64,000 nt of DNA from Zygnema circumcarinatum SAG 698-1b (lineage: Eukaryota; Plantae; Zygnematophyceae), in assembly GCA_037447605.1 (NCBI GenBank), contig CM074809.1, positions 2,470,689 to 2,534,688 on the forward strand. The letters are read 5' to 3'. A model generated the notes under the pieces. That model had not been told where the DNA came from. It saw only the letters and a list, made by a program, of their open reading frames with translations, and did not search any database. Shown here piece by piece: positions 4,885 through 59,522 of the stretch (positions within the stretch are counted from its first letter, which is position 1; every line of letters starts with the position of its first letter). The position numbers and the translations under genes are program-made.

Positions 4885-7632
4885 TCATCCCGCCGTTGAC
4901 CAGTTGACCGGCGCAGCCTCCCTCGGCGCCGCCACTCTTATCGGCGCTTCCGGAACCTTCTTTTTGGACCCCCACCGCCACGCCCACTGCGGGCCCCCCT
5001 CCGCCTCCTCGAGGGAGAAGAAGCGAGGGGCCCACTGCCCCCCCTCCCCCCTCTCCTTCTCCCTCTCCCTCTCCCTCCTCTGCCTCTCCCTGCGCTGCGC
5101 GGCCTCCACGGCCTCCTTCTCGCGCCTCGCCGCGGGCCAGTCCTCCCCGCGGATCGCGGCGCTCAGCCGCCGCCACACGACCATCGACTCCGACGCCGCC
5201 ACCGCCTGGAAACCGCCCCTCAAGCAGGGACCGCCGCCATGGTCAGAAAGGAAAGGAATGAAAGGAAGGAAAGGAAGGAAAGGAAGGAAAGGAAGGAAAG
5301 GAAGGAAGCTCTGTGGCACTCTGAGGCAACATTTGGCAACATTGTTGGACACACTCACCGTCGGATTCACAATCTTTGCAATCGGCACGTTGGAGAGTGC
5401 GGCGGCGGCGTCGTACAGCACTTGCGTTTTGTTGGTCTTAACATTCGTCACAAAGACCTGTCTGCACGCACCGCTTGCATCCCCCCCATGGCACATCTTA
5501 GCACCCGCAGAGCAGGCCGTGCAAGCACCAAAGGCAGATTTCTGGACTCCGGCCCATTTTTGTAGATATGAAGGAAGGAAAGCGGAGACTTACCCATCCC
5601 ATTTCCCACTGAGTTTACAAATAGTATCGCCAGTCCTCGTGTCTTTGACAATCCCCTCCACCGCATTCGGAGATCCATGAAGACCAAAAAACGACTTTCC
5701 CTTGAACGAGACCGTTCCTTCGTACCGTGTCTGCATACAATGCATTCCTGAATAGTGGTAAGGCACAAGCACTGGAAGCCGCCACGTGAGAGGCAGATAC
5801 AACAAACGCAAGCATAGCCGAAAGGAAAAAATGTCAAGCAGGAAATCACAGTTAAAAGACTCTAAGGTTCGTACCTGGGAACACGTGACAGTTGTCACGC
5901 CCAGCCACGTTGCCGAGGGGGTGGGAATGAACTGGAAGGCGAGGCAGGGGGAGGTGAGCTCATAGGTTTCGCCATGGCGATGCAGAGAGAGGGTGCGGGA
6001 GCCGACCATGTCCACTCCCAGCCATGCTCCTGCGCAGGGGGGAGGGAGAGGGCAGGGCTCATGGAACAGTAAGAGCCGAAAGTTTTCGGATTAGGAAACA
6101 GTTTTGAAACATAGGCATTCGAGCTTCTTGTATGCCATGTAAGAAAGGGAAAACAGAAAATAAGCGGAGGATGGATGAGAAGCACAGACCATAAAAATGC
6201 GGAACGGCCTTGTGCCACCATGTCATGCTGAGTTGCTTTTTCTCATTGGTCGCATGCAGTGCAGAGATTGGAGGGTGATGGGACACCTGTCAAAGGACGA
6301 ACGGTCATAGGAGGTGCTAAGATTGGGATTCCTGTCAATTGCATTGACGTGGAGAGTGTGATTGTTGGAGGAACACAAAGTGAGAATAAGCTAGTACAGA
6401 GAAGGAGAGCGAGTGGGAGAGACTGAGAGAAAACGTGCAGGTTGGGAGGCAAAGGGATGAGAAAGGGGAGGGAGGAACGGAGTGGAGGTGGAGGTGGAGG
6501 TGGAGGTGGAAAGTTGCGAGAAGCAAAGTAGCGTAAAGAGGACAACAGGGGCGAGGATAGGCAGGAAGAAAGTAGGAAATGAAGAAGGAAAAGGAAAATA
6601 AAGAGGAAAAGGAGAACGGGAAAACGACGAAGTCAGGGGGGATGGAGGGAGGGTGAGAGGGTTGAGAGTGAGAGGAGAGAGAGAGATGGAGAGGGGGGCG
6701 GGGAGGAAGGGAGGGAGGGAGGAAGGGAGGAAGGGAAAGAGGGGGAGAAGGGGAGAAGGGGAGAGAGCGGGAGAAAGGGAAAGAAAGGAGGAAAAGAGGA
6801 AAAGGAAAGAAAACGAGGGAAAGAGGAAAGAGGAAGGGATAGGGAAGAGTGGCGGGGAGAGGGGGAGCGGGAGAGCGGGAGAGAGAGAGGGAGAGCGATG
6901 GGGAGAGAGAGGGGGAGAGAGGGTGACAGGGAGAAAGCAGAGAGGTCGAAAGGAAGAGTGGGAGAGAGGGAGGGGGAGAGGGCGAGCGGGAGAGGCAGGG
7001 GGAGAAGAAGAGAGGGAGAGAGGGCGAGGGGGGAGAGTGGGAGAGAGGGAGAGAGGGAGAGTGGAAGCGAGGGAGAGAGGGGGAGTGGGCGAGAGGGGGA
7101 GGGGGAGTGGGCGAGAGAAGGGGGAGAGGGAGAGGGAGGAAGAGATATGAGAGAGGGGGGAAGGGGGGAAGGATGAGAGAGAGGGAGAGCAAGAGAGAGA
7201 GAGAGTGACCTGTTCGAGCAACACGTTGAGGTCTCCAGCAGACACGTGGTGCGTCTCCCCTAGCACGGGGTTGTACGGAGCCTTCCCGAAGGTCGGCTGG
7301 CGGGTGGTGGAGAGGTGGAAGCGCAGCACTGCGAGGAAGCGCTCCAGCGGCGAGCGCGCGTCGTCGCAGGCCCCGAGCAGGTCCTGCGCGCACCCGTACA
7401 CGGCCAGGCCGTACAGCTCCAGCTGCGACTGCGCGAGGTTGAAGGAGGGCGGCAGGCGCAGGCGGCCCATGTCCCCCCCCACGCCCCGCAGCAGCGCCAG
7501 CACGCTCCGCGCCCCGCCCGCGCTTGTCTGCTCAGCTCCCGCCACCGGGGCCACGTGGCACTGCGCCACGGCCTCCACGCTAGCGAGCTCCCCGAATTCC
7601 CCCGCGGGGCCGTCTGCTCCCCCGCCACCCAT
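4885..7632 (-). CDS. Oxysterol-binding protein-related protein, ORP4-type (ORD only), about 6 exons
   Basis: KAPYNPVLGETH and the OSBP signature EQ|VSHHPP joined across intron 7209-6287. Further exons encode GKWDG and SESMVVWRRLSAAI...AARREKEAVEAAQR; stop at 4885. Confidence 0.92.
5247..5308. repeat. (GAAAGGAAG)n 9-bp tandem repeat in OSBP last intron
   Basis: About 6-7 near-identical copies are visible directly. Confidence 0.9.
6575..7205. repeat. ~630-bp polypurine/polypyrimidine (GA-rich) low-complexity tract in OSBP intron 1
   Basis: Almost exclusively G/A on the + strand, with GGGA/GAGA units. Confidence 0.9.
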
Positions 7633-9371
7633 GGCTTCCGCCGCCTCGGCCCCCGACTTCTGGGCCCCACTCAGATTACAAAGGTGAATTGTTATTATCC
7701 TTTCTACTACTCTCCACGGGGTTATGGGGTGGGCTGCAGGGATCTACTCTCGCAGCTTCTTCTATTCAGAGCGCGGGAGCGCAGCGAGTAAGGGAAGGCC
7801 GCTGTGGAGGCTCAGTGCCCGCCCGGCCGCCCGCTCGCGGCCGCATTCGGAGGGAGGGAGGGAGGGGCTGCTTCCCGGAAAGAGTCTCCTCACTGTCCGT
7901 ACGGAGGGCGTCCGCGTCGACCGACTGAGAACGACAAAAACTAGGGTTCGCGGGCCGCGACATGCGGGGCTCGCCTATTCGGAGGTTGAACTGTTGCCGA
8001 ATGAGACAGCGGGTTCAAGTTCAATTTTCGCGGCAGCAATTCAACATGCAAGAGGATGATCATTATCGTAGTGAGGTACCTGAATGTACGGACACGCCAT
8101 ATCCGTCGATCCAAAGTGGATCGGGGGTCCACCTTTCCGCGCGGGCCAGTCCACGCCGACAGCGCAGTGCTGCGCGACGGAACGGAACGGAAGTGCCGAT
8201 CGCTGGTGCCGCGCCTTTGAGCGCCCGGCTCGCTCTTCCCTGCGCGCCGGGCGGTCGGCGGGCGGCGCAGCCTCATAAGCGGGGCGGGGGCGGGCCAGAC
8301 CGGCGCGGTCGCGCGGACGGACGACCGGCGCGCGCAGGCCAGGGAGGGGGGGAGGAAGGGGGCCAGGGAGGGAGGGCGGGCGACTGCGACCGACGGCGAC
8401 CGAGATTGCGACGGACGGACTGCGAGGGCGCGCGCCGTGCGTGAGCTGGAGGGCGGGCGGACGCCGGGCGGTCGAGAACCTGCGGGCGGGCGGGCGGCGG
8501 GCGACCCGCGGCCCGCCGAGGATCATGAAAACGCGACAGCACCTCATTGCCGCGCTGCGCCTCTCCTATCCTTGGGCGGCCGCGCCCTGGTCTGGTTGGG
8601 TCTGGTCGGGTCGGGTCGGGTCTCTCTCTCCGCGCGACGTGCACGCCACTCGCAATAGCACATCATGCGACGCAGCGACTTGACGATGACGAGCTCACCG
8701 TGCACGCGAACCTCGGACATAGGGACCTGCCAGACCTTGAGTACAACATCGTCTGCCTCTCTCCCGCACGCCGCACACGCGCAGTGGCGGACCTACATAT
8801 ACGACTTGGTGGGACTTAGCCCTTTCTTCTTCTTTTCATTGTATCTTATGTATTTTATGCTGAGGGAGGGCCTAGCCCCACCTCAGCAAAAATCTTGGAT
8901 TCGCCAATGCACACGCAGGCACACATCTATTGCCTTGGTATCTGGGCGAAACACAAAAGCAATATAGCCCGCGGGAGACAGCCAGGCTGACTTTTGCAGA
9001 GAGCAGAAGGGCGGGTTTTGAAACCTGTAGAGGGCAGCGGATGGCGCGTGAGACGAGCGGCAGTCTGCATGCAAATCGGGGCACTGGGTTTCTATGCGGC
9101 AGTTACCGTAACACGCTGCCAGTTGAGGACAAGGGTAGACCTGGAGGCGTTGACGGCGGGTCAACTGAGCGTGGACCTGCCAAAGCCGTCGTCTTGACCT
9201 CGAAAAGTTGAACTTCGCACTTGCGAGAGTGTTCAACTGGAAAAAAACCCAGATCCAAAAGAAGTTAATTTTCATTGTCGAAATGTAATTCAAAATCTCG
9301 GTACCTGTTCAAACCTCGTGGTGGTATTTTGGCGTGCACGACTCGAGATCTGGGTACGCGCGCAGGACTGC

Positions 9372-9740
9372 GTCACGTGGCAGCCCTCCGGAAAGCACGA
9401 CACGTTGCACGCCCTTCAGGCGCAGCATGACACGTGGCGACTTGAGGGGCGTCGTCGAGGGCGGGCTCCGTGTACGCACTTTCAATAAAGCACGCTGACT
9501 GCCACGTGCCATCTCTCGATAGGGCAACGCGACCTCGCCCTGTCGCCCTCACGATCTTGGCCGCCACGTCGGCCCGAACGGCCCCCGGCAACGGCGGCGC
9601 GTCCCCTCGGCCAGTCCAACCTGTAGCTCACACGTGCGACCGCAACGCGGCCATGCATTTGCCACGTGGGTGCACAGGCATCGGCGGGAACGTTTGTCGT
9701 TTTCTGGTTCTGAGAAGCTCGAAGTTTCCAGCCGCGTGGC
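9372..9740. promoter_or_regulatory. G-box/ABRE cluster in the divergent region between the OSBP and glycosyltransferase genes
   Basis: CACGTG at about 9374, 9431, 9503, 9631 and 9663 (several as ACGTGGC/GCCACGT), GCCACGTC near 9563, and CE3-like CCGCGTGGC near 9732. Confidence 0.55.
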
Positions 9741-10016
9741 CGGCCGTGACGGCCGTCCAGCCGGCCGGTTGTCCGGTTGTCCCCCACAGAAACGACAAAC
9801 TCCCCCGCCCAAACACGCCTGCCCCAATGTACGGTAGCCGGTTTGTAGCCGGCCGGTTCTCCGGACGTCGCCAGCCGGTCCGCGCACCAGAGTGTGCCGA
9901 GGGCGTGTCGGGCGAGGCGCGGCGGAGGGGGCTGCGGACGGAGAGCGTGGGGCGGCACAGTTCCATGGGCTCTCGATAGCGCCCCGCGCAACTCAACGGC
10001 GAACACAACTGGCACC

Positions 10017-21115: not shown

Positions 21116-21340
21116 GGCTGAGCGCGCCTCGCGCGCGAGCGGAGAGGCGGGAAGCCTTCTCTTTCGAACGCGCTGGTCCTCCAAAGCCGTCGGTCGGTAT
21201 CCGATACGAATGTCCGAGAATATCGACCCCTTGGCGATACACAGTATATCGTGATATTTCAACCTACTGAATCAGCTAGTTATTAATTCTACTGGATCAA
21301 CACGTTATTCTAGCTCTCAAGCGCGATGCACTTAGAAACT

Positions 21341-21493
21341 GGGAAAAGAAGTGACATTGATCTCACGATGGCGAGGCCATCAAATGTACATGAACAAAAT
21401 CAGCATGGGGAACCACGAGGAGCTGGTCGCACAGGACCATTTGATGACATTTGATGACATCGCCATCGTGAGATCAATGCCACGTCCTTTCCC
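21341..21493. mobile_element. 153-bp MITE-like element with ~46-bp terminal inverted repeats (repeat family R1)
   Basis: Left end GGGAAAAGAAGTGACATTGATCTCACGATGGCGAGGCCATCAAATG. Right end reverse-complements to GGGAAAGGACGTGGCATTGATCTCACGATGGCGATGTCATCAAATG. No clear TSD. Confidence 0.7.
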
Positions 21494-22633
21494 TTCTGTT
21501 ATGCTTGACGCCAAAGATGTTAGGCCTTGGAAATTTCTCCTTATTGAATTTCCATTTTCTGACAGCTGGCGAGTTCTGCTGGTGTCCTGCTGCCTTGCAG
21601 CTCCCTTGCAAGGATAGGGGCAGGTCTGCAGACAGGGTTGGCGAACGGTTTACATGCTCCAGACTGAGTCGTACTGAATGAAGATACCATGGTTCGCTGG
21701 CGTTAGAGGACGGGCGCAGGCGAGCCAGCCGGGCCCTCCAGAGGCGGCCTTCCTCGCTTTCTGCTACCATGCCGAGCAGGTGTATCAGGCTGTTAAACTT
21801 TGGTATTTCGCATCGAGACGTTTATCGATAGCAGTACACCGCTAGTTTGATCGTTGGTACACTCAAAGACCCAAATGTACTGGTTTTGAGGAGCAATGCA
21901 TTTGGTAGCAGCGGAGGCTTCCTGCAACTTGTTTTCTCGCTTTGGCGGAACCACTCTGCAAGCCGCGGCTGGCGCAATGGCGGCCAGGGACCTCCAGGGG
22001 ACTCGGCCGGCTCGGAAAGACGACTTTACGAAGGCAGTCATTAAAGAATTTGAAGATTTAACCGACCCTTGAGTTAACAAAGGTTATCTGGAACGTAAAG
22101 AATATTTTGACAAAAAATACGAAAAAGCAGCAGGCACAGAGGCTCGGTTCCAACGGCGGGTGTGTGAGGCCTTGTCTATGCTTCTCCTTCCCTTCCTATT
22201 GTTATAATCGGCCGTACGCCGTACAGATTCAAGAATGGCAACTGGGATGTACTTCACTATTGATTCTCCTTTTTTGTTTTTCTTCCTTTTTACCATGGAC
22301 ACAGAGAAGGTTGTTCCCAATTCACACTCGTGCAGTTGAAAATGCTACGAAGCACCTCTTGGAAGTTAACTCATTGATAGTTTTGTTTTCAACATCAATA
22401 ATAAACAAAAAAGGGGGCCAAGGTTGTTCGGCTGTTCTAGCTCGAATCAAGTAATGATGCATCAGAATCGTGCACGTTCGGAGTAGCTAAACTCAGATCA
22501 ACAATTGGCAGTACCAATGCCTGCTTCTCTAAATGCACGTGATGTATACTTCTGATTCTGCCTGTCTGTCCATCCGCCAGCTTGTGAAGACTGCCAATCA
22601 CTTGAAAGCTGCCAATCATTTGAGGGCTGGCGA

Positions 22634-25456
22634 TCACTTGAGCTGCTGTAGAATCCTAACAGCCATTGTCGGACCTCCATCGCCTGCTCGGACAATCTCA
22701 CATATGCTAGAAAGACCTGCGCATGGACAAGCACGCCAAGCTCGGAAGACGCAAAAAAACACTTAGTTAGCCATGGCAGCATAACGATGGCTACTTGAAT
22801 CATTACAGAACTGTTTTCGTTTGAATCCTATTCAAGCCTCGTCGTCTGAATAGTCTTCAATTCGCATCAAGGACAGCTCGTGTTCCTTTCCACACACCTT
22901 CGTTCGGCTGCAAGTTTGTGCAAACCGCAGCTCCGTACTTTGCGCATTTGCCTCTGCATAGTAGCAAGGTAGAGACAACAAAGCGAACGGCTTACTTGGT
23001 CGTGCGATAAACCTTAGCAATTATGATTTTTGAAGATAAACAGGTTGATGTTCATTCACATTCTGACCAAATCCAATATCATACTGTCTAATGGGCAGCG
23101 CGTGAATGCACGGCACATAGATGAGTGTATGCTTACCTCGGCTTCCAGTCGCCAGCATTTCCAACCCACCCTTTTGTGTTAAAAATACCTGCAAAAGAAA
23201 TGGGCGAACACGCATTATGTAAACATGAAGCGAGTTCCGAAAAAACTGTTTAGATGCACTCGGAATTAGGAGTATGGGAGAGAACAGGGAGCAGAGTTAC
23301 CTCTTGTTTCTGGAGAGGAAATATTATGCGCATCGAAAATGCCTCCGATGGCTTGATCAGAATGGAATGGCGTCTCATGGCTTCCCAAAGTAGCATAGGT
23401 CCACGATCCATCCTTCCAACCATCCATGAAATAGAGCTCCCACTGTCGGGCATCAATCACCTGCATAGTGCCTGCAAAAGCAAACAAGGAGGAGATTCAG
23501 CGACTATCTGCTCTGTCTGCCTCGGCCACAGTAAAATGAATAAGTAACGCTTAAGTTGGCTCGATAAAAAACAGCAAGACACTATTCACATGACTTTCTC
23601 ACCTTCACAACTGCTCAGATTGCAGATTGGACAGCGGACTAAATGCAAATCTGCACCAAAAACCTCACCAGAATCAAAAGCTGTACAAAACAGTAGATTC
23701 TGACGGACAAGTGTCCGTGCATCTTGATGGACCTTTCACGGTCCCCTTGATTCATATTGTTCTCAAAAAAAAAAAAAAAAACCATAATCGATAAACTATA
23801 CGACTGTTTGATTATGCCCTCCCTGGTCGTTTTGCATTGTCCTGCTGTCTCGTCCCCTCCCACCCAGGCTCTTTTTAGTTGCACAGCTGCATAAGTTAAT
23901 GTCACGCTCCAGAACGCAAAAAACATTTGGACGAAGCCTTGCTAAACTGCATGCTTTTCACTTACCTGCAATCCAGATTCCTGGGGCAGCACCATCAATA
24001 CTCCAACAGCTAGATGGCTCAAAGTCGCTTTTGATAGGCTGATAAACAGAACGACATAACAGAAGTCAGGCGTGAAAAATCATGTTTGTATGGAAAGGAC
24101 AACTGCATGCATGGTGAAACCAGTGTCTCTGTCATTGGTAACAGAGTTGTGCGCAGAGGTTTCTAATGCGGCAGAGCATCAATGCGCAATAGATCCCTAC
24201 TTAACCAAGAACTAGTAATATGGTGCCAGCTGTGAGGAATTTTAGGAAAGAAAGTAAATAGCAAGGATGATAGGAGTTCGCTTGCAAAGCTACCTGTGGG
24301 AGGTCACCGTCGATTGAGAAAGATGGTGATGTAGATAGCAGATCCGTTGCGAGAATCCTTCCAGAAGTGACATTGAAGGCGCCAATCCTCATCCAATCTG
24401 CATGCATGAGATGCTCTTCTCTTAAAAAATATGTGCTGATTTGAGGCTAAGGTTTGCAGTAGGCTGTGGAAGTAGTACATTCCATGGAAACGTTAAAATC
24501 TCACCAAGATGTTTGTCAGCAGATCGGGTACTGTAAGAATGAATCGGCTCTGGTTGAAGAGACGCGAACAGGTTAAAGTTAGCACCTTCACAAGCACCAG
24601 CAAGACTTTCAGGATTTTGCTCACGAGTATGCATTCACTTGAAACCGATAAATAAAATTTGGAATCAAGGACACTTTACGACTTTCAGCTGACACGCAAA
24701 CAGGATTCACGCGCTTGCATCGCCTGGCGCCTATAAGACGCTGTTAACGAACAATGGCTTTCAAGCGTTTCATTCAAAAACTATTTTTTGGCTCACAGTA
24801 ACGAAAAGTGCACAGGCACCTGCAATAGCAGCAATAAGCAGCTCCCTCCAACCGAAGCTAGGTTCAGTCGCTGGTTCGTCAACATGAAGGTTCTGCAAAG
24901 CAAGGTGCTTCCAGAGAACCTCCTCCAGGGCCAATGAATGAAAAAAATGGCTGACACTGGACATCCTGACAAGATCATCAGGATCAAGGAAGCCGAATAT
25001 TTTGATCCAGGGAATTGCAGGATTTTTTAAATCCTGATCCGCCCTGCAATGAAATCCAATGCCATACACCGGCAAATACGTCCATGCGGATGTATGTCAG
25101 TCTGCATACACGACAATAGTTTCACAATAGTCCGCTAATAGTTGCATCACATAATGTTAGATGCGGAGAAACTCAATCTTTAAATCGAGTAGTATCGCAA
25201 ACCAACGTTAGATGGTGCTAAGTGACAGTCCTTAATCCTGCAGCTTCGCAAACTCGCAGCCCTTTCGATCACCTTTCACAGAAGGCAGTTGTTTCTAGCA
25301 CCAGATTTGTTTGCTCCCGCGCTTGCACATTTAAAATATGCACAAAATAAGCATTTACCTCGTATTGTCGTGTGAAGCCTCCCTGGAGTCATCACATTTT
25401 CTACGCCACGATGAGCAATTGATGAAACTCGTAAAATACTTCACAGCCTGCTTCAT
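22634..25456 (-). CDS. F-box protein of the RMF/ZYGO1 (meiotic SCF) family
   Basis: F-box PWIKIFGFLDPDDLVRMSSVSHFF..LWK, then spliced PIHSYSTRSADKHL|DWMRIGAF, GIWIA|DLHLVRCPICNLSSCEG|TMQVIDARQWELY..GWKDGSW, GGIFD, GWVG..DWKPR, AVCTNLQPNEG, AVRILQQLK*. These match my recollection of RMF/ZYGO1 motifs. Start provisional. Confidence 0.88.
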
Positions 25457-28265
25457 ACTCAACCTTCAGCCTTCTTCTCCCTGCTGCTGCAGGCTACTTC
25501 GTCGCAGCAGGCGTTCAGACCCAGTCGTCTGCAAGCAGCTGCCGGGGTTGGGTTGCAGTAGGCCCTTCCAAAACCTCTCTCCCGCCTTTTGTAGGGAGGG
25601 AGCCGCATTCTCAGGGAAGCTTTTGAACGGCGTTTTGAATTTCAAGCACTTTTTTCCTGATCAAAAAATAACGTATACTGTACGGACGCTTTTCAGGGTC
25701 CATGCAGCCAATCAGCGCTCGAAGACTGGCCACGTAACCAAAAAAAATCGAGCTAAAACAATTAAAAATATCACATTGGGTCCATTTTCGAAACGAACGC
25801 CTTGAGCGCCAAAGTGTGCCCGTACCGCCAAAAGCTTCCGGCCCAAAGGTGGTCCTCTCTTCTTGCCGGTGCAAACACACACATCTTCCGTATGTGAAGC
25901 ACCTACACAGTCATTTTGTCGGTGACGTTTCTCGACCTATTCTTCTCATCTTTGATGTTTCTTTCAATTGTAGGACTTCCTGGATAAATCTGTTCTTCCT
26001 GTTGTTGGAGCTAATGAGGTATACTGTCAGGAAAGTTCAGGATGCACTGCAGAGGACGTGAGCCAGCTGAAGAGAGGGTCTAAGCCTATGTTGAGAGCTT
26101 CAGTTACCGAAACTGTTGCAATGCCTATAGACAGAGTCGGCTTCGTACAAGCAAAGTGTGTTTCATAGCACTGTGGGAGGATAACCAATGCCTTGGTGTT
26201 CCTTTTTTTGCTGTCTGATACCTCGACAGGACCTACTCCTTATGGATATGGCCGGACTGACGTTTGCATATTTGGATTTTTTTTTTTATATCTCTGGACG
26301 TATGCAAAAGCATGTGCTGTTTGAATGCAGAATTCGACTATACGCTGTTTGAATCCGACTAGTTGAACTCCGAGGCTTTTATGCAGTCCAAATGCCTATT
26401 CACCAGCGAGTAGCATGCAGTTCACTGTGCTCCCTTTCGTTCCATTAATCTCTCCTTTTCTAATTTCATCTCGTTTATCTGCAGCATTCTGCATCCGACT
26501 ATCTGTGCATGAGGTTAGAACTTTCGCCGTTTCTTTTTAGGCTTTCAGTTCTGCTGCCAAGCCTCATACGCTAGAAAGTGAAAAGGCGAGCTCTTTTCTG
26601 AACACTCCTGGACTCTGGAAAGCGACGACGAACCAGCAAGTTTTGGGTCCGCTGTCCTCTATGGTGAAGTCGACAGCAGATATGGCCACTGATCGTATTT
26701 GGAAATCGTTGTTTGAAAAAGCTTCATTTTTTTTTTTTGTTCGTGTTCATTGGTTACAAGTGAACGCGGTGCCATTGAGGCGTGGCACCATAGAATGGAT
26801 CCTTGGCAAGCTCCTGTGTGACTGGGTGGGAAAATTTCCCGCTTCAACATCTGTTCCTGTCGATCTTCCGAGCACAAGAGAAGCATCCTGTCGATCTTCC
26901 GAGCACAAGAGAAGCATCAGATCAGCTCGAGAAATGCAGAGTGTTCGTAATCGATATTGAATCGCATGGGTGTTTCAATTGCTTTTCCTCTCTTGTAAGG
27001 AGGAAGAAATTAAGACCGCAACAATTCTCAGAGTTGATTCGAGGGTCAATGGAAAGCTTGGTGCCATCGCTGAATACGAGGTTGCCCACTCTATCCACTC
27101 TATTACATCTAAATTAGTAATCATCATAAGTTTCCCGCGGAATTGTCCCTTGCATTTACCTATCCGTTGTTCTGAGGGATTAAGGCATTGGCACTCATTC
27201 TCGCGAGGTTTTGATACCCATATCCTACGCCATCTTCTCTACATGGGAAGGAAGTATCTACATGGGAAGGAAGTATCTGTTCACCTTTCAAAACACTGCA
27301 AACCTTCTTGACTATATTAGTAGCCACATCTGCCTTCGCCATAAATTTGACTGTTTACGCTGCAGGCCTTTCATAGATTACTCTCAGAAGGTCTGCTCAA
27401 AATATGGAAACCGAACCTCCGTGAAGGGAAATGAAGCCTCATGCAAAAAGTCTGGTGAAAAGTCCAACTGCTTTGGAATATAGGAATGCTATGCGAGGTA
27501 TCCCAGATCATCCAAGATCTCCTGTGATACTAACAGCCCTTTGCAGGCTGCAACCGGCAAAGAACTGCACACCTCGATTACTTTTCATATTGCTTATAAC
27601 ATAGATGTTCAGATTAACTTTGAGGCAAATTGCATTTTCCCAACACATACACAGCGATTCCAACGTTCAGCAATCGCATGCAAAACAACATTCATCAGCC
27701 GAGAAGGCCAAACAAAGCTTATTCGATGCTAGAAACTAAGCTTGCATACAGCAAAAAGAAATTCGAATGGGGGCAAGAAGCCAAGAAAGAAAAAAATCGA
27801 GAGGTTTCACAGCATGCCTCGTTTGAACATGTCATGGCAATTTACGACGAGGCAGAAGATATCCAAAATGAGAATCCATACACTCCGGATGAACAGCGTC
27901 CTACTCAAAACTAGCAAACCGCACCAAGGAACAACATGCTCTTAAATTTTTGAAAAATAAAATACAGCAATGTTTCCGTCTCTCTCTCGACTTCTCTCGT
28001 TCTTCAACAGCCTTTTTCCGCACACGAACATGTACATTCAGTTTTCTATTCACATCATGGACTTATCGATGCCTTCCAGAGTCTCCACCGAAATCTTTAC
28101 CCCTGCCCTATATTAAAAAAATAGAAAGGGTAAAGAAACCGTGTGCTTATCGGAAAAGCTTGACCTATCCTTATTCCTCCCCATTGCATACGTATCGGTC
28201 AAAAGAAAGAGAAGGTCAGAATCCTTCGGCACAACGCCCCCATCGCCGAGGGAAAAACCTCCACA

Positions 28266-28463
28266 TCAGTGGTGAGGTCCAGGATGCGGCTGCGGCGGGT
28301 GGGGCCCAGGATGTGGCCCCCCCTGCGGCCCCCCGGGGTGCTGCCCCTGCCCGGGGCGGTGCGGGTCGTGCTGCGGCTCGCGCGGCCCTCCCTGCGGCCC
28401 CCCCGGGTGCGGCGCGGGGCCGCCATGATGCGGGTCGTGCTGCGGCTGGTGCGGCCTCTCCAT
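28266..28463 (-). CDS. Small His/Pro/Gly/Gln-rich intronless protein (65 aa), unknown function
   Basis: MERPHQPQHDPHHGGPAPHPGGPQGGPREPQHDPHRPGQGQHPGGPQGGPHPGPHPPQPHPGPHH*. Internal duplicated unit, good GCCATGG start context, CCAAT and ABRE motifs upstream, AT-rich 3' flank. Confidence 0.6.
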   Translation of the reverse strand: MERPHQPQHDPHHGGPAPHPGGPQGGPREPQHDPHRPGQGQHPGGPQGGPHPGPHPPQPHPGPHH

Positions 28464-28639
28464 GGCTTCTGCGCTGGCTGGCAGGCAACCTTCTTCGCCC
28501 CTTCGCACTTGCAGCCGTTGCCGCGAGAGCGCCTCCCCTTCCAGAGACATCTGCTGCTCCGCGGCCTTAAAGTTCGAGCCGGGCCGGTACATGCGGTCGC
28601 CATCGAAGGAAGGGACCGCGGGAGCCAATCGCCGTCTGC

Positions 28640-28920
28640 CACGTTACCACAGGACCTGACGTGGCAAGGCGCCATTGGTCCAGCATGGCCGCGGTGCGCC
28701 CAGCGGCCCCCGCGCGACGCGGTGGAGCGGGGGCCGGGCCGGGGGGCCTCGTGGCGAGGAGCGCTGTCACTTGGCGCCACGTGGCGCCTGGACCCGTTCG
28801 GCCGCACGCGACCGCCAGCGCAGAGCGTGCCACGTCAGCAAGTGCCTGGACTGGCGAACGGCCCGGGACGAACAAACTTACGGAGCTCGTTGTAGTGCCA
28901 CTTGGCGAGGGACACGTGAC
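28640..28920 (-). promoter_or_regulatory. ABRE/G-box and CCAAT motifs upstream of the minus-strand His-rich ORF
   Basis: GACGTGGC ~28658, GCCACGTGGC ~28775, GCCACGTC ~28829, GACACGTG ~28911, CCAAT (minus strand) ~28675. Confidence 0.5.
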
Positions 28921-29088
28921 GGAATGTGTATGGCGACTCGCGCGTGCCGTGCCACGCTCTGGTTGGAGGGACAGTGGCGCGTTCACTCGTGAATAATGCG
29001 AAGGCGACGGGCACAATGCTAGTACCAAGTACAACTAAGGAATCAAAACTGAAAGTCTGGAAGAAAGGAGTTGGATAAAAAGAAAGAG

Positions 29089-29255
29089 GTCCATGCACAT
29101 TTGATGGCCTCGCCATCGTGAGTTCAATGCCATTTTCCCTGCTATTTGCATCGATCTCAAAATGGTAATGCCATTAAGCAGACAAGTTCAACACGAGGCA
29201 CCACAAGGAGCCGGTCACAAAGGACTTCAGGGCAAAAAAAGAAAACCCATGAGGT
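29089..29255. mobile_element. Two head-to-head ends of repeat family R1
   Basis: 29089-29139 reads CCATGCACATTTGATGGCCTCGCCATCGTGAGTTCAATGCCATTTTCCC (reverse copy). 29145-29255 is a degenerate forward copy including CACCACAAGGAGCCGGTCACAAAGGAC. Confidence 0.65.
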
Positions 29256-29457
29256 GACCTCTGCTTATTGGCTCGACAACACGGCCCCAGAAATAATCTG
29301 GACTGTTAGATTCTACGTAAGCATGACCTTCGATTTCGCTTCCCGATTGAACATCTAAAAATGACCACATTGGACCTTTCGGAACTATTGGCTACACGAA
29401 GGCAAACTTCTGTAGCGGTCGCTACGCCCAACATGTGGCCCGCCTTACGGCCTTACC

Positions 29458-29549
29458 GTACGGCTACGCGCTTCGGCCTTACTGTACGATATGACATACG
29501 GACGACCGTACTACATGTACGGTGAATTGTACGAATATCCGTACAGTAC
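29458..29549. promoter_or_regulatory. Dense GTAC cluster (SBP-box / copper-response-element core)
   Basis: GTAC at 29458, 29484, 29508, 29517, 29529, 29541 and 29546 (7 in 92 bp), several as CCGTAC. Confidence 0.5.
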
Positions 29550-30744
29550 GCCCATACGGCGGGCGTCCGTCAGTCCTGGCGGACGTGCAGCAACCTTTGA
29601 CGCGTGTAAGAGGCGATCCCATGACACGTGGCGCCTCGCCAGTGGCTGGCCCTGCTCCCGGTCCCTTACGCTGGTAAAGGGTTTGACGGGGGGAGCGGAG
29701 GAGCAGGGGGGAGCGGAGGGGCATGGGCGAGCGCTCGGAGCTCGCTGGAAACTAGCACACAGAGGGAAGTATGGCAAGGGGCTGAAAAGCCTCTTGTTAC
29801 AACAACAGCGTGGGCCCCGCAAGTGCGCCCTAAATGTTGAGCAGCTAATTCTAAAGTTCTGGCGCTCCAACTGTTGTAAAATTTGAACCTGACTTCCGAA
29901 AACTCATAATCCATCCATAGATCGAGCAATTCACAAATCTCAGGACATGTACATACGTAGCTCTTGTAATTAAGTTCCTTTTTCACCTTCTCTCTACACC
30001 ATTCATTAGTTATTTTTTCCTCCCGTGGTTCCTTTTGCCACCCGAGCCCCTGTTTTCATCCACCCCGCATTTCTCACTTCCCAGTCCCTCCCTGGCCGTG
30101 GATCCTTCTCCCTCCCCGCGCTCCCTCCCTCCCTCCCTCCCTCCCTCTCATCCGCGGCCTCTGGTTCCCGGGGGGTTGGCCCGAGCCTCCCTCCCTCTGC
30201 GCCCGCTGCGGGCAAGGGCAAGTTCGCACCGCCGCCTGCCGCACGTGACGCAAGCCGTCGTCATTGCCCTGCCCCGTCTGAGCTTGCAACGCGTTGTCCC
30301 GCGCGCACGGAACATCCTATCGTATCGTACAATATCGCATTCAATGATATCGGTAGAGCCCGTACGCTCACCGTCAGTGCCGTACGGTCCCGAATCCCGC
30401 TTCCCCCGAAGGTTCTCCGCCTTGCCGAGACGTGTCGCGGACGCAAATTTCCTGCTCGACCGTTCCGCCACTCGCGTGCTGCCACGCTTGCGAGGACCTC
30501 AAACCGGCCAATCAGCGGCGGGCTGGCGCTCAATAGGAGCCACAACGCACCTTCTCCTCGCCTCTATAAGTACCGCGGGCCCGCCAGCTCTGGAGAGACT
30601 GACCTCTTATTTCGGGAGCCTTCTAGGTTTCAAGGCTCTATTCGTCTTCTAGGGCTGGTGCTCAGCTCTGCAGCAGCAACAGCAGCGCCAAAGGGAGAAT
30701 TTTACGGCGTCTTGCCTCACGTAGAGCGCGAAGGAGTCTCAGGC

Positions 30745-30960
30745 ATGGGCCATCCTCACGACCAGCATCATCACGATAATCATCACGATCATCATCATCA
30801 TCATCATCCGCATCATCCTCCTCCCCACCATCCTCCGCCGCCTGTTGTGGTATTCACACCACCGCCTCCGCCGGTGGTTGTCATCGATCCTTTCGCCATC
30901 TTTCGCCCTCACCCTCATCCACCTCCGCCCCACCATGGCCATGGCCCCCATCATCGCTAA
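30745..30960 (+). CDS. Small His/Pro-rich intronless protein (71 aa, ~24 His, ~22 Pro), unknown function
   Basis: MGHPHDQHHHDNHHDHHHHHHPHHPPPHHPPPPVVVFTPPPPPVVVIDPFAIFRPHPHPPPPHHGHGPHHR*. GGCATGG start context, TATAAG ~30565 and CCAAT ~30508 upstream. Confidence 0.65.
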   Translation: MGHPHDQHHHDNHHDHHHHHHPHHPPPHHPPPPVVVFTPPPPPVVVIDPFAIFRPHPHPPPPHHGHGPHHR

Positions 30961-32913
30961 TGGAAGGACATCGGATGGAAAAGGCAGCAATGTATATGAT
31001 GGCCATGTAGCAGTTAGGCAGTTTTTGGAGACTGGAGGTGACTGGAACTCGGTATCAGTTTTTTGTTGAACTGATGGATGAACAGTCCAGTTAGCTCTAT
31101 TTTGGAAAATAGAGGGGGGAGGAATTGTAAGGGAAGGATTTTCTCAGGCTGTTTGGTGAATGTGGCAAACAGGAGGGATTTGCTCGTCTCTATAAGGTAG
31201 AAGACCTTACTTAAAAAATACTATATAAGACAGGAAAGGCTGCTAGAATCTACCAAGCATCCTTGTTTTAGGGTGATTTGCAAAAAAAATTGTAAAATGA
31301 TTTGTAAAATGTGCTCGTTATGGGGACTTTTATGCTATTTGCTTTAGCGAGTTTAATTGTTGTACACGGTGTTCAGTCGTAGAACTGCTTTGCTGCACCT
31401 GCACCCTGCCCTGGTTTTGAATACAATAGCTATCTCGCAGTACTGCAGCACAGAAAGGAAGGAGGAACAATCGATGAGGATATCCTCATCTGAATATGTC
31501 CATCAAGATTTATGTATTTTACTTTACTCCTCAAGAACGCTCTACTACATTTGCTGCTTCCTTTTTCGTGGTTGTTGAAGTCTGTGATTTTGGTGTGTTG
31601 CGAATTGCAAATTCCTTTGGCTCGTTCAGGAAGATAACCTGCCAAAGATGATGTTGGAACGACACAAAGCCCGAGTTAACAATTGACAGAGAAGGTTTCC
31701 GAATGTACGCAGAAAAATGAAAAACCCAGATTCTCAGTCTCATTCACTTTTTTTGGCTGATTTCTTTTGGAAGGGGAGGTGTTAAAAACTGTGGCGAGTA
31801 TCCCGCACTGCTCGTCCGTGAAAAGTTTAAAACGGCAGATGGGTTCTACAGACAAGAATTAATTCTTGGTCTATTGTCTTTCGCTTTTTCCAGATTGAAC
31901 TTAGCAAATCATGCAGGTTTTCGTTGTTTGAAGATAGACGCTGCAGAGTACAAATTGTGCTTAAACAATCGACTCTAAAAAAGGTGAGAGTCTTTCTTCA
32001 TGTACTCATGTACTTCATTGCCGACTTTCACGGCTGCTTTTGGAACCGAGCTGCTATATTATGCATTCTCCCATGCCAACGTCAGGCAAAAAGTTACTAG
32101 CATGACTTACTCCCTGTTAAGGTTTTGCCATCAGTGTTGCATTTAGTCCCGACAGATCACTCACACAGGCTACAATCAGGACTGCCTTCCACTGGACATG
32201 GACAAAAAGGTCCAAGCCAAGATCAACAGTGGGTCTCCGTTCCACGAGCACTCATCAGTCAAGGACAATCTACCCCATGGCCTCGTGTTACGTTTCACAT
32301 GAAGAATTCCAGACCTATCACATACACAGTAGGAATTAGGGGAAGACTACTTGATCACAAAGTGAAAGTCATGACGGTCCACATAGTTGTATGGAATCTG
32401 TATGCCTCGTGGTTTCCAACAATGCACGAATTTGAAAATAGGGCAAAGGGTGAAGGACAATCACGGGAGGTGGACAGAGAAGACTGCCAGGCTCAGTAAC
32501 CGGTAGGATTGAATACGACAAAAAAACCCGGTAATAAACTCTTGTTACAAAACGAGCTCAGACTGCAGTTCTCCTGACTCCCATGTCAGCTAGTACACAG
32601 CTTGGCGTCATTACCTACAATCCAAACCATTGTGGTTGGAAAAGTCATATTTCTCATCTCAATTTGCTCATGATGCCTCCGCTGCGTACAGGCCTGCATC
32701 CTTTGTGAACTGCCAGATCAACTTGATCAACTTCTACGCATGAATCCGGGCAGACTTGTGCCAGCTCACAGGTAACCTTCCATCTCCAGCTAACCAATGA
32801 CCTCCTCGTCTTTTTGGTAAAAAATCGGAAAGCATCTCCCAGGTCAGCGTATAAGAAAAGGATCCCAACAATTGATATTAAAAAAAAGAAGAGGAACACT
32901 TTACGAGAAGAAT

Positions 32914-35638
32914 CTACTTGGATTCAGCAGGAGCTTCCTTCTTGGCCACAGAACCCGTGGTTGGCCTGAACAAAATACACCCACCACCACCAGAGAGGTT
33001 AATCCACATTTTAGTTTGAAAGTATAAGCGCTTACACAGACGACCTATGCATATCAGGTAGCAATTTCCAGAAGCCGCCTCACCATGAACACTGTCCCTA
33101 GGCTGTGAGAGTTCAGGCATGACATCAAACTTCCTTCACTAGGCAGTAGGCAGGCCGTGAAAATCGAGACAGTACAACATCCCCGAATGCAGAGAGATTC
33201 TATGGTCAACAAAAGCAACCATAAAATAGGAATCGCAACCTATATTTTCTAGTACCCGCTCTTCTATTTGACCAAATGAAAAAGAAAGGCCATTTGCGGG
33301 AAACAAGAACCAAGATAAGGTGGGAAGAACTCACAGGCCCATGGAGACCTTGAATGCATCATAGATACCCCATTGGGCTCCAGTAAGGGTGCCAATCATC
33401 ACAATACGAAGTGGAAGCCCTCGGGTGAAGAGACCCACCATACCGAACTCGGACACAGCCTGCCCAAATCAGCATACGGCAAGGTGATCAAAATCTCAGT
33501 ACCGAGTATGAGGATTGCTGCTCTAAACTCTACATAACGTCAAAGATCCCTAACAAATAGACTGCGTACACCATTTCTAAAAAGCGATCCAGAAACGCAC
33601 CCTCCCCNNNNNNNNNNCCCCCCCCCCCCCCCCCCCCGAAAAAAAAAAACAGCAGCAGTGAACATACCAAAAATAAAAAAAAGCTTGAGGCATGGAATGG
33701 ATCTACGCTATTTGTGAAACACAGTTGTACCTCTAAAAAGCTACGGTTTTTAGTCCACCAATGAAAAATGCAAATTGTCATATAAAAGTACGAGAATGAT
33801 GTAGCTGTACACGGCATACCTGGGAGATAGTTGCCCCCTTCGACTTGTTGAGATAAGACACCAAGTTGTCAGCTGGATGCGATACAATTGCGCAGAAGAC
33901 ACCCGCAATGTATCCCGCAAGGAAACTGACACCCAGTTGAAGTGGCTTTGTGCAATCATCCTTGGGATATGGCACGACATACTGATACAGGGCCTCCACA
34001 GTTTTCTCAAAGCAGGCGAACTTCATCATCGTATCTGAACACAGAACACGACATCAACAAAGACAAGTTAAAAAAGAAATCCTGATTGTACAAGCACGTC
34101 GGCCACAAAAGCTACTAGGTCATTATATGATTACAAACAAGGAGCAGTCCCTAAGCCGAAATAACCCAGCCTAACAGAAAGACAGTGACTAACAGCAATA
34201 CTCAAGCACAATGACCCTCCAGCTCGATCACTTAACATTCGCGAGTGGACCAGTGCACACTTGTAGACAGAGCTAATAGGCAGCAGGACCCACTTTGAGG
34301 TTCACTCCAACCAGTAGAGCAAAGGTTGCTTATACAAAAGTGCAGAAATGCCAGATTCTTCCGACAAGGCAGCAAGGCAAAATGATTATATAACTTATAT
34401 TTGGAAAAAGATCATTAATGAATAAAACACATTTAAGAATACTTACAAGGAATTTGACGTCCCCACAGAGGGCCCAATCCCCTGTAAAGCCTGCATTGGA
34501 GCAAAAAAATAATAAACACATTAAATTACTCCCTCACACATTGAGCAGACAGCGACATTATCCAGCACATCACTATGAATGACATTTCCGCTCTGATTTT
34601 GGCCCAGAACCATCTGCCCACAATCGTATAACAAGAAAATCAATGTGCAGTCATTGATAGGCCAATCCTGATAAATGAATTCACTACACAATCTCCAAAG
34701 AAAACAGTCGAGGGACAGAAAGCTAAAAAATACAGCACTTACCCGCCCACACCTTCGGCAGCGACAATCTTTGGCCACCCGTCAACCAATCCATTTGCGA
34801 ATCCAGGCTGAGTTTGAACTCGGACTTTGACAGCCTCAAAAGGGCAAAGAGCCACGTCAGCGATAAGTTCAGCCGACGCACTTCCGGCAAGATAGATCAA
34901 AGTCTTGTACTTGGCAGCATACTCAGGACCAGCAAGATCGGAGTAGTACTTCTTAAAAAATTCATAAAACCCAAACTTGCATGCACCCTGTGCACTATAT
35001 CCAAGAAGAGTAGGAAACCAGCCCTTAAAAAATCCTCCCACGCCCTGCTCTTTGTAGAGAATGCCAAAACCGGAACCGATGCTCTTGTACTTCACTGGAT
35101 CAATCTGCAAGCGCTCCCAAGCAACCATTCCAAGTAACAGGCAACTGATTCAGCGACTCGTATGAAGTGGGAGTCATGCCAACCTTTAAAAAAAAAGGAA
35201 AAACAAGCTCGACGGGACAACGCGGTAGGAAAATACAACGGATCACAGCTCTGCAACTCAAAATAGAGGATAGGACAAAATGGACTTCACAGCATTTTGT
35301 AGAACTCCTATGGATCTTACCTGCATGTTACACTTCACCAGATCGAGAGGAGTGACAGCCATATGAGTCAGACCGCAGCTCAACACACCACCGAGAGTGC
35401 ATGCTGCGTAGTACTCCTTGGAGTACAGGGCGATCTTCTTCGATTCAACAGCTGCAGGGATCAAGAACTTTGAGGTCTGCACAGCAGCCTTTCGGAAAGG
35501 CGTCTCCGCCAAGACAGGCGCTTCCGCAACTCCTGGCAAAGCTCCAAGAGCTCTGGCCTTCGCGAGAGCCGAGAAAGCCCCCGTGGTGTACAGAGATCCT
35601 GGGATCAGCGGTTGTCTGAAGTCCTGCGACGGCGCCAT
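32914..35638 (-). CDS. Mitochondrial phosphate carrier (PHT3/MPT family), 6 exons
   Basis: [31 protein letters not shown]|[83 protein letters not shown]. Confidence 0.97.
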
Positions 35639-36177: not shown

Positions 36178-44479
<8,302 letters not shown>

Positions 44480-50292: not shown

Positions 50293-50638
50293 CCTAGCTT
50301 CGTTTTATTGTGTTTCGGTCCTTTGTGACCAGTCCTTCGTGGTTCCACATTTTGCCTTTCTCCATGTACATTTGATGGCCTCGCCATCGCGAGTTCAATG
50401 AAAATTTCCCTGCCTGACTTTAAGAACTATTGATTGGAATCCTAAACTGCGTTCCACATGCTGCTTTTATCCATGTACATTTGATGGCCTCGCTATCGTG
50501 AGTTCAGTGAAATAAAGAAGAGGGAAGTGGCATTGATCTCAGCTCGCGAGGCCATCAAATGTACATGGACAAAATCAGTATGGGGAACCACGAGAAACTG
50601 GCCGCAAAAGGACTTTAGCACAAAAGAAAAAAGCTAGG
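50293..50638. mobile_element. Cluster of three repeat-family R1 copies forming a ~118-bp-arm inverted repeat
   Basis: 50293-50410 is a diverged reverse complement of 50522-50638 (GGGAAGTGGCATTGATCTC...GAGGCCATCAAATGTACATGGAC...AAAGCTAGG). A third partial reverse copy lies at 50449-50510. Confidence 0.75.
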
Positions 50639-56926: not shown

Positions 56927-57343
56927 TGCGTCGCCGACCACTTGACAAGGTCGTTCCACTGATGAAGCTAAATTCTAGCTCCTCACACAAGCTCTCTCCC
57001 TTTGCAAGCTGGCTTTGCCGCCAAAGCACGCAGATGAGGAGCCAACGGAGATGCAGCAAGAAAGTCGGAAAAGAATATGCGGATGCTCTCGTTCTCGCGA
57101 TGCGGGAGGGAGGGAGGAAGGGAGGGAGGGAGCCACAAGCTCTTCCAAGGGGAGGGGAGGAAAGGGAAGCGAGCAGGCGGGCGGAAAGACGTGTGGACGA
57201 AGACAACGCCTTTCCTCTCCTCTCCCGTCCAAATATTTTTTTACGAAGAATATTCTCAAGCGGCTAAAGTATTTGCACCACGGGTCCGTACGGCGTACGG
57301 CTCGCGTTGGCACCGTACGGCCATTATTTTTTAGTTTTTTTTT

Positions 57344-58292
57344 GGGTAGTGATATTTCCACCCCTTTTTTGGATCCAAACACCCCTTCCCGGCCGGGCAG
57401 ATTTCCAAAGGCATTAAAAACGGAGAATGCTTTTTTCACACCTTTTTGGAATCGATACCCACCTTCTTCCGTCGGCTGATTTTATTTTTGCTAACCAAGG
57501 GAAATGATACCCCGTCACTGCATTTTGAATACTGTATCCCGCCTCCCTGAAATTTTTTTTTTGAGGGAAAGAAATATCTGCCAGCCCGAATCCGCTCGAA
57601 GTGGAAGATCCGTCCGCCACGAGATCGTTCGCGGGTGTCCGTCCTTCACACGTGTGTGTCAATCGCAGCTGTCGATTCCCTCGCAGATCGCACCACTGCA
57701 GATCACCGTTCGATCTGCAGCCGGGCTCGATCTTAGCGAATGGAAAGCGCCCACGAGTCCCGTTAAAGCCGGATCGCCCGTGCGAGTGCGCGCGTCCCTC
57801 GGCCCGAGATCTCGTCATTGTTAGCTCTCAGCCAATAAACAGCTGCCACGTGTTACAGTTTTGACGTGGAAAATTTTGATTGGTCCAAGCTCTCAATGTA
57901 CGAAATTTTGGGTTCCTCAAAGTTGCGACCGTACAACATTTGTACGGACAACTTTTGAGGCGACTTTGGCGGGATACGTGGGCTCGTGCCATTCGCTGTG
58001 ACCGAGCCCGGCTGCAGATCAAATAGTGATCTGTCGTGTTGCGATCTGCGAGGGAATCGACGGCTGCGATTGACCGCACGCGTGAAAAGAAATTCAGGTA
58101 GGCGGGATATTCTAAATGGGGTGACGGGTTATCATTTTTCTTGTTTCGCAAAAATAAAATCTGCCGATGGAGGGTGGGTATCGATTCCAAAAAGGTGTGA
58201 AAAAAGCATTTTCCGTTTTTAATCCTTTTTGAAATCTGCCCGGCCGGGAAGGGGTGTTTGGATCCAAAAAAGGGGTGGAAATATCACTACCC
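57344..58292. mobile_element. Non-autonomous Mutator-like (MULE) foldback element with long TIRs
   Basis: Begins GGGTAGTGATATTTCCACCCCTTTTTTGGATCCAAACACCCCTTCCCGGCCGGGCAGATTTC and ends with the exact reverse complement. Inverted similarity continues for ~330-420 bp (left arm has an extra ~85 bp). Flanked by T-runs (9 T left, 13 T right), compatible with a 9-bp TSD. No transposase ORF. Confidence 0.88.
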
Positions 58293-58570
58293 TTTTTTTT
58301 TTTTTGTAAACACAGGAATTGTTCACTTACGAAACAAGACCCCACCGCTTACAGTGGTACTGTATTGCGTATTGCCAAGCGGCCGACTGCTCCTTCAGAA
58401 TTGTAAATAGTTCAGGCGCAAATTGTGTTGCTCTGCCCGTTTCGAACGAGTGCCCTGTGCCCGTTCGCGGGCGAGGCGCTGCTTGCAGGCCATGGCCGGC
58501 AAGGCGAAGTGCCCGCGCCAGTAGCAGCAGGCAGAGGCGAGCTGCGGAGAGGCAGGGCTGGAGGGGGGCC

Positions 58571-59522
58571 ATGGACGCCGCAGAGGAGACGCCGGAGCAG
58601 GCCGCGCTCATCTCTGACGTGGAGCGTCTCAAGATTGTGTGGCGGAACGAGAAGGCCGCGCCCGAGATTTTGGCGCATCAAGGGGACCTCGTCGCTCGCC
58701 TCGCTGAGCAGATTCAGCTGCTGGTAAGGGCTCAGGGAGGGTGCAGGTTGCGGGAGGGGCCCAGCAGGGGCAATTGATTGCAATAGTCCTTGTCCTACCG
58801 GGTTCTTCAGAAATGCAAAGGCGTGCTGAAATGCGATTGCTTTTGAAAAGAGGATCGATGAGGTGGGGTTGAGTTAAATGCCTGAGGATTAAACGTGTTT
58901 TTAGGGCTGAGTCTCTCTCTGGCTAGCTTCTGTGCTTGTGCTTCCGGCGGCATCTGCGGTTTTGGATATTAGGCGGACAATGGGACGACTTGAAGGTTCC
59001 TCTATTGTTCAAATCCCTGTTTGGATTATGAGTCGTTATAAAAAGGTTCCGCTTTATTTTTTGTTTTTTGTTTCAGTCCTCCGCACCAGAATGCCTTGAA
59101 GGCCACATGCCCCTTAATAATTTGGTGGCTCCCTCCAGATGGAAAACACTTCTCACCTCGACTTAGAATGTGTTGCCACTTAGCCACTGCAGTCTATGAT
59201 GGAAATTGCGACAAGACCTTACTGTTAGAGTACATTCAACTTTTCGAAGTAAAGTCGACCCCATTCTTTTCTTTTTTAGAAGCAGGAAATCTCAGAATTG
59301 CAAATTTTACGTGATAGTTCTTGAATAAAAACGACCATAAACGAGCATTTTAGCACCCTGACTCAGTTTGAACATATTGGACTTCCCAAGCATGTAACGA
59401 TTGTAAATTGAGATTCGCGGCGTCAGAGACAGAGCAAAGAACAATCGGATGATTGAATCAAACAACTTGAAAAGTGGGAGCTCTTCCTGGATTTTTCATT
59501 TCTAGAGGTGACAGAAATTCAG

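Follow-up and report, generated by a model that had tools for sequence, protein, structure and literature searches.

The two open reading frames (ORFs) considered here lie head to head in a 64,000-nucleotide stretch of DNA from the zygnematophyte alga Zygnema circumcarinatum SAG 698-1b. The whole stretch is called the window, and positions are counted from its first letter. Both ORFs, named A and B, are probably genuine microprotein genes that lack introns, are specific to their lineage and have a promoter each, as far as the DNA itself can tell. Their products may be disordered, histidine-rich stress peptides that buffer copper or zinc; this reading is favoured here, and it is held tentatively. 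The divergent arrangement of a 65-residue frame on the minus strand and a 71-residue frame on the plus strand, reported in the original prediction, was verified in the sequence, together with the start and end residues quoted there. The ORFs and their immediate flanks are laid out as follows.

28266 to 28463, minus strand: ORF A, 65 amino acids, with its ATG on the 28463 side and its stop on the 28266 side
28315 to 28461, minus strand: tandem duplication within A, unit of 69 nucleotides (23 codons), 2.1 copies, 80% identical
28464 to 28571, minus strand: putative 5' leader of A with a TATA-like word at 28566-28571, read from the sequence
30508 to 30744, plus strand: upstream region of B, with CCAAT at 30508, a TATA box at 30565-30570 and an ATG-free putative 5' leader
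30745 to 30960, plus strand: ORF B, 71 amino acids
30832 to 30903, plus strand: hydrophobic core at residues 30-53 of B, made up of two PPPPVVV units and then a short Ile/Phe stretch

The composition of the two products sets them apart. Among the 508 ATG-initiated ORFs of 40-150 amino acids in the window, A and B are the top two by His fraction (0.20 and 0.34, respectively, vs a mean of 0.033 and a standard deviation of 0.029). The description of both as dominated by His and Pro suits B, with His at 34% (24 residues) and Pro at 31%. It suits A less well, which is rich in Pro (32%), Gly (22%), His (20%, 13 residues) and Gln (12%), and the two are less alike than had been described. A is hydrophilic throughout, with a grand average of hydropathy (GRAVY) of -2.04, no hydrophobic segment in the hydropathy profile and no Pro run longer than two. 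B (GRAVY -1.37) has a His-rich N-terminal arm, then a Pro/Val core, then a His/Pro tail. The core is short, Pro-rich and unsuited to a transmembrane helix, with a 19-residue hydropathy of 1.46. An AlphaFold2 model of B contains secondary structure of at most three residues and has a predicted template modelling score (pTM) of 0.23, with no globular fold. Disorder, as had been proposed, agrees with both hydropathy values and with the lack of a predicted fold for B. Neither product shows a hydrophobic N-terminal stretch, which bears out the claim that signal peptides are missing; the products would therefore stay in the cell.

The status of A and B as genes is probable and is backed by consistent though indirect signs. 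Internal DNA repeats are offset by multiples of three in 20 of 21 segments of A and in all 32 of B, and the least variable codon position in these repeats is the first. Synonymous variation is the stronger coding argument, because triplet periodicity alone would also give the offset pattern. Repeated peptides in both ORFs are spelled with different synonymous codons: the duplicated blocks of A vary at synonymous sites, and six of the seven codons differ synonymously between the two PPPPVVV units of B. At both start codons, position -3 is a purine and position +4 is G, as at the start of a neighbouring carrier gene. A TATA-like word and a CCAAT box stand upstream of each ORF, those of A being the word listed above and a CCAAT at 28674-28678 (minus strand), in accordance with what had been reported. 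Just past the stop codon of A, the G+C content drops from about 0.7 to 0.42.

Relatives of the two products were sought in several collections, all of which penalise low-complexity queries and contain few genomes from such algae. Pfam gave no match for A or B at E-values up to 1, and neither NCBIfam nor an exact look-up gave any. Word searches, with a reach of 0.55-1.75 times the query length, returned no relative, and the same was true of the ESM Atlas and of JGI metagenome contigs. No match to A was found among PDB sequences, and no relative of B among 1.84 billion representative sequences, where B only was searched. The ESM recognition scores of the two ORFs, 1570 and 1467, lie under the range of known families. 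Nothing in the literature searched describes peptides of this kind from these algae. The earlier statement that the pair belongs to no nameable family thus stands. It should be read as "no detectable family" and not as "unique", because biased sequences are discounted and few such genomes are held in these collections.

The ATGs of the divergent ORFs are 2281 bp apart. Four features, which carry no strand assignment, mark the spacer between them.

28638 to 28835: G-box/ABRE-type cluster (ABRE, abscisic acid-responsive element), five ACGTGGC words in about 200 bp, upstream of A
29089 to 29244: decayed half-copy of an inverted-repeat element of about 350 bp, resembling a miniature inverted-repeat transposable element (MITE)
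29456 to 29549: imperfect GTAC hairpin with seven GTAC cores in 92 bp (SBP/SPL-type, mostly CGTAC)
30327 to 30385: three CGTAC/GTACG sites that precede the TATA box of B by 180-240 bp

The five ACGTGGC words near A were reached in none of 1000 shuffles of the spacer, and CCAAT boxes at 28625 and 28674 accompany them. At 9371-9770 another cluster is just as dense, with five copies each of ACGTGGC and CACGTG within 400 bp, which makes this promoter type a common one here. GTAC occurs 15 times in the spacer, whereas other bins average 5.8 and reach 11 at most; CGTAC occurs 13 times vs 2.4. Clustered GTAC cores, as in promoters of the SPL7/CRR1 copper regulon, are thus present. The central GTAC array is 993 bp from A and 1196 bp from B. 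Its folding z-score of -3.6 was computed on a hand-picked stretch, and Rfam returned nothing credible in 27000-32500. The hairpin was rejected as a microRNA or other non-coding RNA, since self-complementary GTAC words fold unaided, as they do at 57275. A 131-residue ORF at 29491-29886 was likewise rejected as a gene; it belongs to no family, and its Tyr content stems from the GTAC words. The MITE-like element has a fuller copy at 50293-50638 and a further copy at 21324-21502, and its conserved core of 40-50 bp occurs six times in the window. The original prediction had the two genes share one co-regulating spacer. This idea found no support: the motif sets of the two proximal promoters differ, and a transposon relic lies between these promoters. 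The spacer looks like a mosaic in which a single shared promoter is unlikely, and A and B are probably regulated separately.

The favoured reading draws on what is known of other disordered stress proteins. How well 27 peptides derived from dehydrins silenced Cu-driven radical formation depended on His content and length (PMC3617826). Extrapolation of that fit gives a half-inhibitory dose (ID50) of 0.59 uM (A) and 0.37 uM (B). Dehydrin promoters typically carry ABREs (PMC6275027), and zygnematophytes co-express a PYL-PP2C-bZIP module (PMC12185132). It is because of this His-dependent radical silencing, these promoter elements and the co-expressed bZIP stress module that A and B are read as metal-buffering stress peptides. 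By analogy, metal binding is a reasonable expectation from their His content (PMC3617826). The mechanism that we infer has expression, metal binding, regulators and a stress role as its steps. The products would remain intracellular and cytosolic, as unfolded polyproline-rich chains that display many His side chains. The imidazoles of these residues, 13 in A and 24 in B, would bind loose Cu(II) or Zn(II). A Gly-His N-terminus binds Cu(II), and B would start with Gly-His once its Met is removed. Bound metal would mean less metal-driven radical formation in drying or osmotic stress, as with AtHIRD11. A would probably be switched on by bZIP factors through the G-box/ABRE cluster. B, and perhaps both genes, may answer to SBP/SPL factors through the GTAC sites; SPL7, a regulator of Cu deficiency, binds GTAC (PMC12430517).

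Several points weigh against metal buffering. The fit behind the ID50 values was built on dehydrin peptides and not on Pro-rich chains. Metal binding should not be equated with function, because any His-rich peptide binds metals in vitro. No orthologue of A or B was found in the searches described above. SPL7 and CRR1 activate genes under Cu scarcity, which fits a Cu scavenger poorly; the mismatch is eased if the GTAC sites repress or if the metal held is Zn. Moreover, a second CCGTAC cluster and hairpin at 57275-57330 precedes an unrelated gene, and as a control it indicates that clusters of this kind also occur away from copper genes. Since other SBP factors also recognise GTAC, and since this second hairpin stands before an unrelated gene, the link to copper is only a possible one.

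Comparison with known systems helps to place the two products. The closest in manner of action would be the His-rich KS-type dehydrins of late embryogenesis abundant (LEA) group 2, such as Arabidopsis AtHIRD11 and citrus CuCOR15. A and B resemble them in being small, hydrophilic, disordered, His-rich and unsecreted, in an ABRE-type promoter (A only), and in a His content within the range at which Cu radicals are silenced in vitro (PMC3617826; PMC6275027). In contrast to dehydrins, they lack K-, S- and Y-segments, contain no Lys, Ser or Tyr, are about 31% Pro and have no Pfam dehydrin match. They would work like His-rich dehydrins, yet they are not dehydrins. With plant proteins rich in glycine and proline (GPRPs), they share a length below 200 residues and the absence of a signal peptide, and B also shares the three-part layout of a polar arm, a hydrophobic middle and a His/Gly tail (PMC7504531). 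However, the N-terminal XYPP repeats of GPRPs are absent, as is any Tyr. The central Ala-rich domain is also absent: the middle of B consists of Val, Phe, Ile and Pro with one Ala, and A has no such middle. Nor are there C-terminal HGK repeats, since Lys is missing and only B has a short His/Gly tail.

More distant likenesses exist outside these families. Prion-protein octarepeats bind Cu. They and the vertebrate histidine-rich glycoprotein (HRG), with its GHHPH repeats, resemble A and B in composition only, through Pro/Gly-spaced His on an extended chain. The His/Pro-rich region of HRG binds zinc (PMC5988744). Both are parts of larger secreted animal proteins, unlike A and B, which have no GHHPH pentamer array, no Trp and no sequence match to them. 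Extensins and cell-wall proline-rich proteins share Pro runs and His, with PPV words in B, but A and B lack a signal peptide, Ser-Pro3-5, PPVYK-type repeats and Tyr/Lys cross-linking motifs. ASR proteins and Helicobacter Hpn are small, His-rich, disordered metal-binding proteins. A and B differ from the former in lacking the ABA/WDS domain (Pfam, E-values up to 1), from the latter in lacking Cys pairs, and from metallothioneins and CYSTM proteins in having no Cys at all.

The alternative that survives best, although it is unlikely, follows the original prediction more closely. It supposes one inverted duplication and a pair jointly driven by a bidirectional spacer, in which the central GTAC array could, for instance, act on both genes, and it overlaps in part with metal buffering. 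What was called an ancient inverted duplication finds a weak echo at the 5' ends. The first 14 residues of A and B match at eight positions (p about 0.002, for a segment chosen after the fact). The last 80-120 nucleotides of the two 5' leaders are colinear (p 0.01-0.06 against shuffles). Taken together, leader and first 14 codons, from TATA word to codon 14, give p 0.003-0.04 when the null shuffles the two segments separately. Joint drive is also favoured by the position of the GTAC array, almost midway between A and B, and by the presence of two such rare ORFs only 2.3 kb apart.

Beyond the 5' ends, the kinship fades. The whole proteins align no better than shuffles: the local alignment score of 79 is below the shuffle mean of 91, whole-protein comparisons give p 0.13-0.88, and p is 0.13-0.58 once alignments are adjusted for composition. 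The two proteins have no 5-mer in common. The GPHH ending, offered earlier as a sign of kinship, is present in both, but at p 0.08-0.12 it is not significant. Coding DNA, 3' flanks and upstream promoters align at chance level, with p 0.05-0.94 for the upstream alignments. The core promoters had also been said to resemble each other, from the TATA word to CTCTGGA. Many unrelated places in the window give either core word a higher score than the other gene does, and the match, being no better than chance, was rejected as proof of duplication. For unrelated genes in the window, the leaders come close to the scores of those of A and B, and many tests were run. Codon habits differ, with a G+C content at third codon positions (GC3) of 0.83 in A vs 0.44 in B. 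Furthermore, the G-boxes cluster at A, and the transposon relic separates A from the GTAC array. Within the favoured reading too, A and B may be old paralogues with only their 5' ends still alike, and the odds of this are about even.

The next alternative, also unlikely, places the switch in protonation. A and B would then be pH- or metal-switched hydrophilins, whose His residues become protonated on cytosolic acidification or drying. They would bind membranes, nucleic acids or themselves, in a gel or condensate, and metal buffering would be incidental. The computed net charge, which is about -1 at pH 7.2, rises to +5 for A and +10 for B at pH 6, and the hydrophobic core of B is flanked by two His arms. 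In dehydrins, His motifs mediate self-association and lipid binding (PMC6275027). However, A and B offer few aromatic or Arg stickers, and A is without any hydrophobic segment.

Ranked third, and no less doubtful, is the view that A, B or both are not made as described. They could be non-coding, a by-product of triplet repeats, or the end of a longer product, with A starting from an upstream ATG and B serving as a last exon. Part of B is indeed coded by a run of CAT triplets, and the missing relatives and low ESM recognition scores point the same way, although blank searches are weak evidence for sequences that such searches penalise. The length of A, 65 residues as a candidate, is provisional because in-frame ATGs lie upstream at 28550 and 28592, which would give 94 and 108 residues. 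The frame of B stays free of stops for 240 codons upstream of its ATG (30025-30744), a length matched in 9 of 2000 shuffles. Nevertheless, this long frame contains no ATG. Another open frame upstream of B occupies 30035-30652, and these open frames are probably an effect of composition. The idea that the stop-free frame supplies B with a signal peptide was rejected, as it offers neither an ATG nor a usable intron. The view is also opposed by repeated peptides that vary synonymously outside the CAT run, by start and stop codons that exactly bracket the biased segments, by TATA boxes close upstream and by the ATG-free leader of B.

An extended form of the metal-buffering reading can also be drawn up, and it is quite unlikely. 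A and B would belong to a family of streptophyte-algal microproteins, not yet described, that buffer metal without cysteine and in which a duplicated pair has split into one copy driven by drought (G-box/ABRE) and another driven by copper status (SBP/GTAC). If this were true, the split pair would have wired desiccation to copper homeostasis before land plants arose. If A and B are expressed and bind metal, they would rank with the smallest metal buffers built on His that have been described from the green lineage, and would give algae near land plants an alternative to His-rich dehydrins that does without Lys. Both whole peptides can be synthesised, which makes the metal-buffer idea cheap to check. 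Small low-complexity genes like these are overlooked by annotation and homology search. The surprise is moderate, because the case is built on composition and promoter words and because His-rich disordered stress proteins are already known.

Lower still stands the proposal that the working part is the proline-rich chain. The products would serve domains that bind polyproline (profilin, WW, GYF, SH3) as short ligands or as decoys, and the His runs would act as targeting tags. B has four poly-Pro runs, the repeated PPPPVVV and one DPF tripeptide. DPF is a word bound by the AP-2 ear. The nuclear localisation of OpsDHN1 is steered by a His-rich segment (PMC6275027), which agrees with the tag idea. 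Short motifs of this kind arise by chance in Pro-rich chains, however, and the Pro runs of A end at two residues.

The notion that the true product of locus A is read from the plus strand is very improbable. On that strand, a Cys/Gly/Pro-rich frame that looks like a metallothionein exon covers 28275-28425 and has its wobble positions in common with the His frame. It has no ATG and no polypyrimidine acceptor, it meets a stop at its start and another inside the repeat, and every promoter signal at the locus points to the minus strand. The Cys-rich frame is most likely a codon-pair shadow, since a Pro-His or Pro-Gln codon pair with a final G automatically reads as Cys on the opposite strand.

The surroundings of the pair add further observations. 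On the left, the neighbour is an F-box gene at 24773-25096. On the right lies a spliced mitochondrial carrier gene (33330-35638, minus strand), convergent toward the pair, which we take from its sequence to encode a phosphate carrier. Its promoter has a G-box and a CCAAT arranged as at ORF A, and an assembly gap of Ns is located near 33610, inside one of its introns. Farther away, near-perfect inverted repeats of about 135 bp (57343-57480 and 58130-58295) enclose about 950 bp and mark a young non-autonomous DNA transposon. The CCGTAC hairpin at 57275-57330 adjoins this transposon, which sits a short distance upstream of a gene whose start is at 58571. The first exon of that gene is reminiscent of the GINS subunit SLD5; Pfam gave no match on that exon. 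A G/A-rich low-complexity array of GA and AGGG units at 6635-7205 shows the strongest strand skew of the window. Finally, a 52-bp tandem repeat in three copies, 97% identical, occupies 42853-43008, directly before a helicase HA2 exon at 43005-43805.

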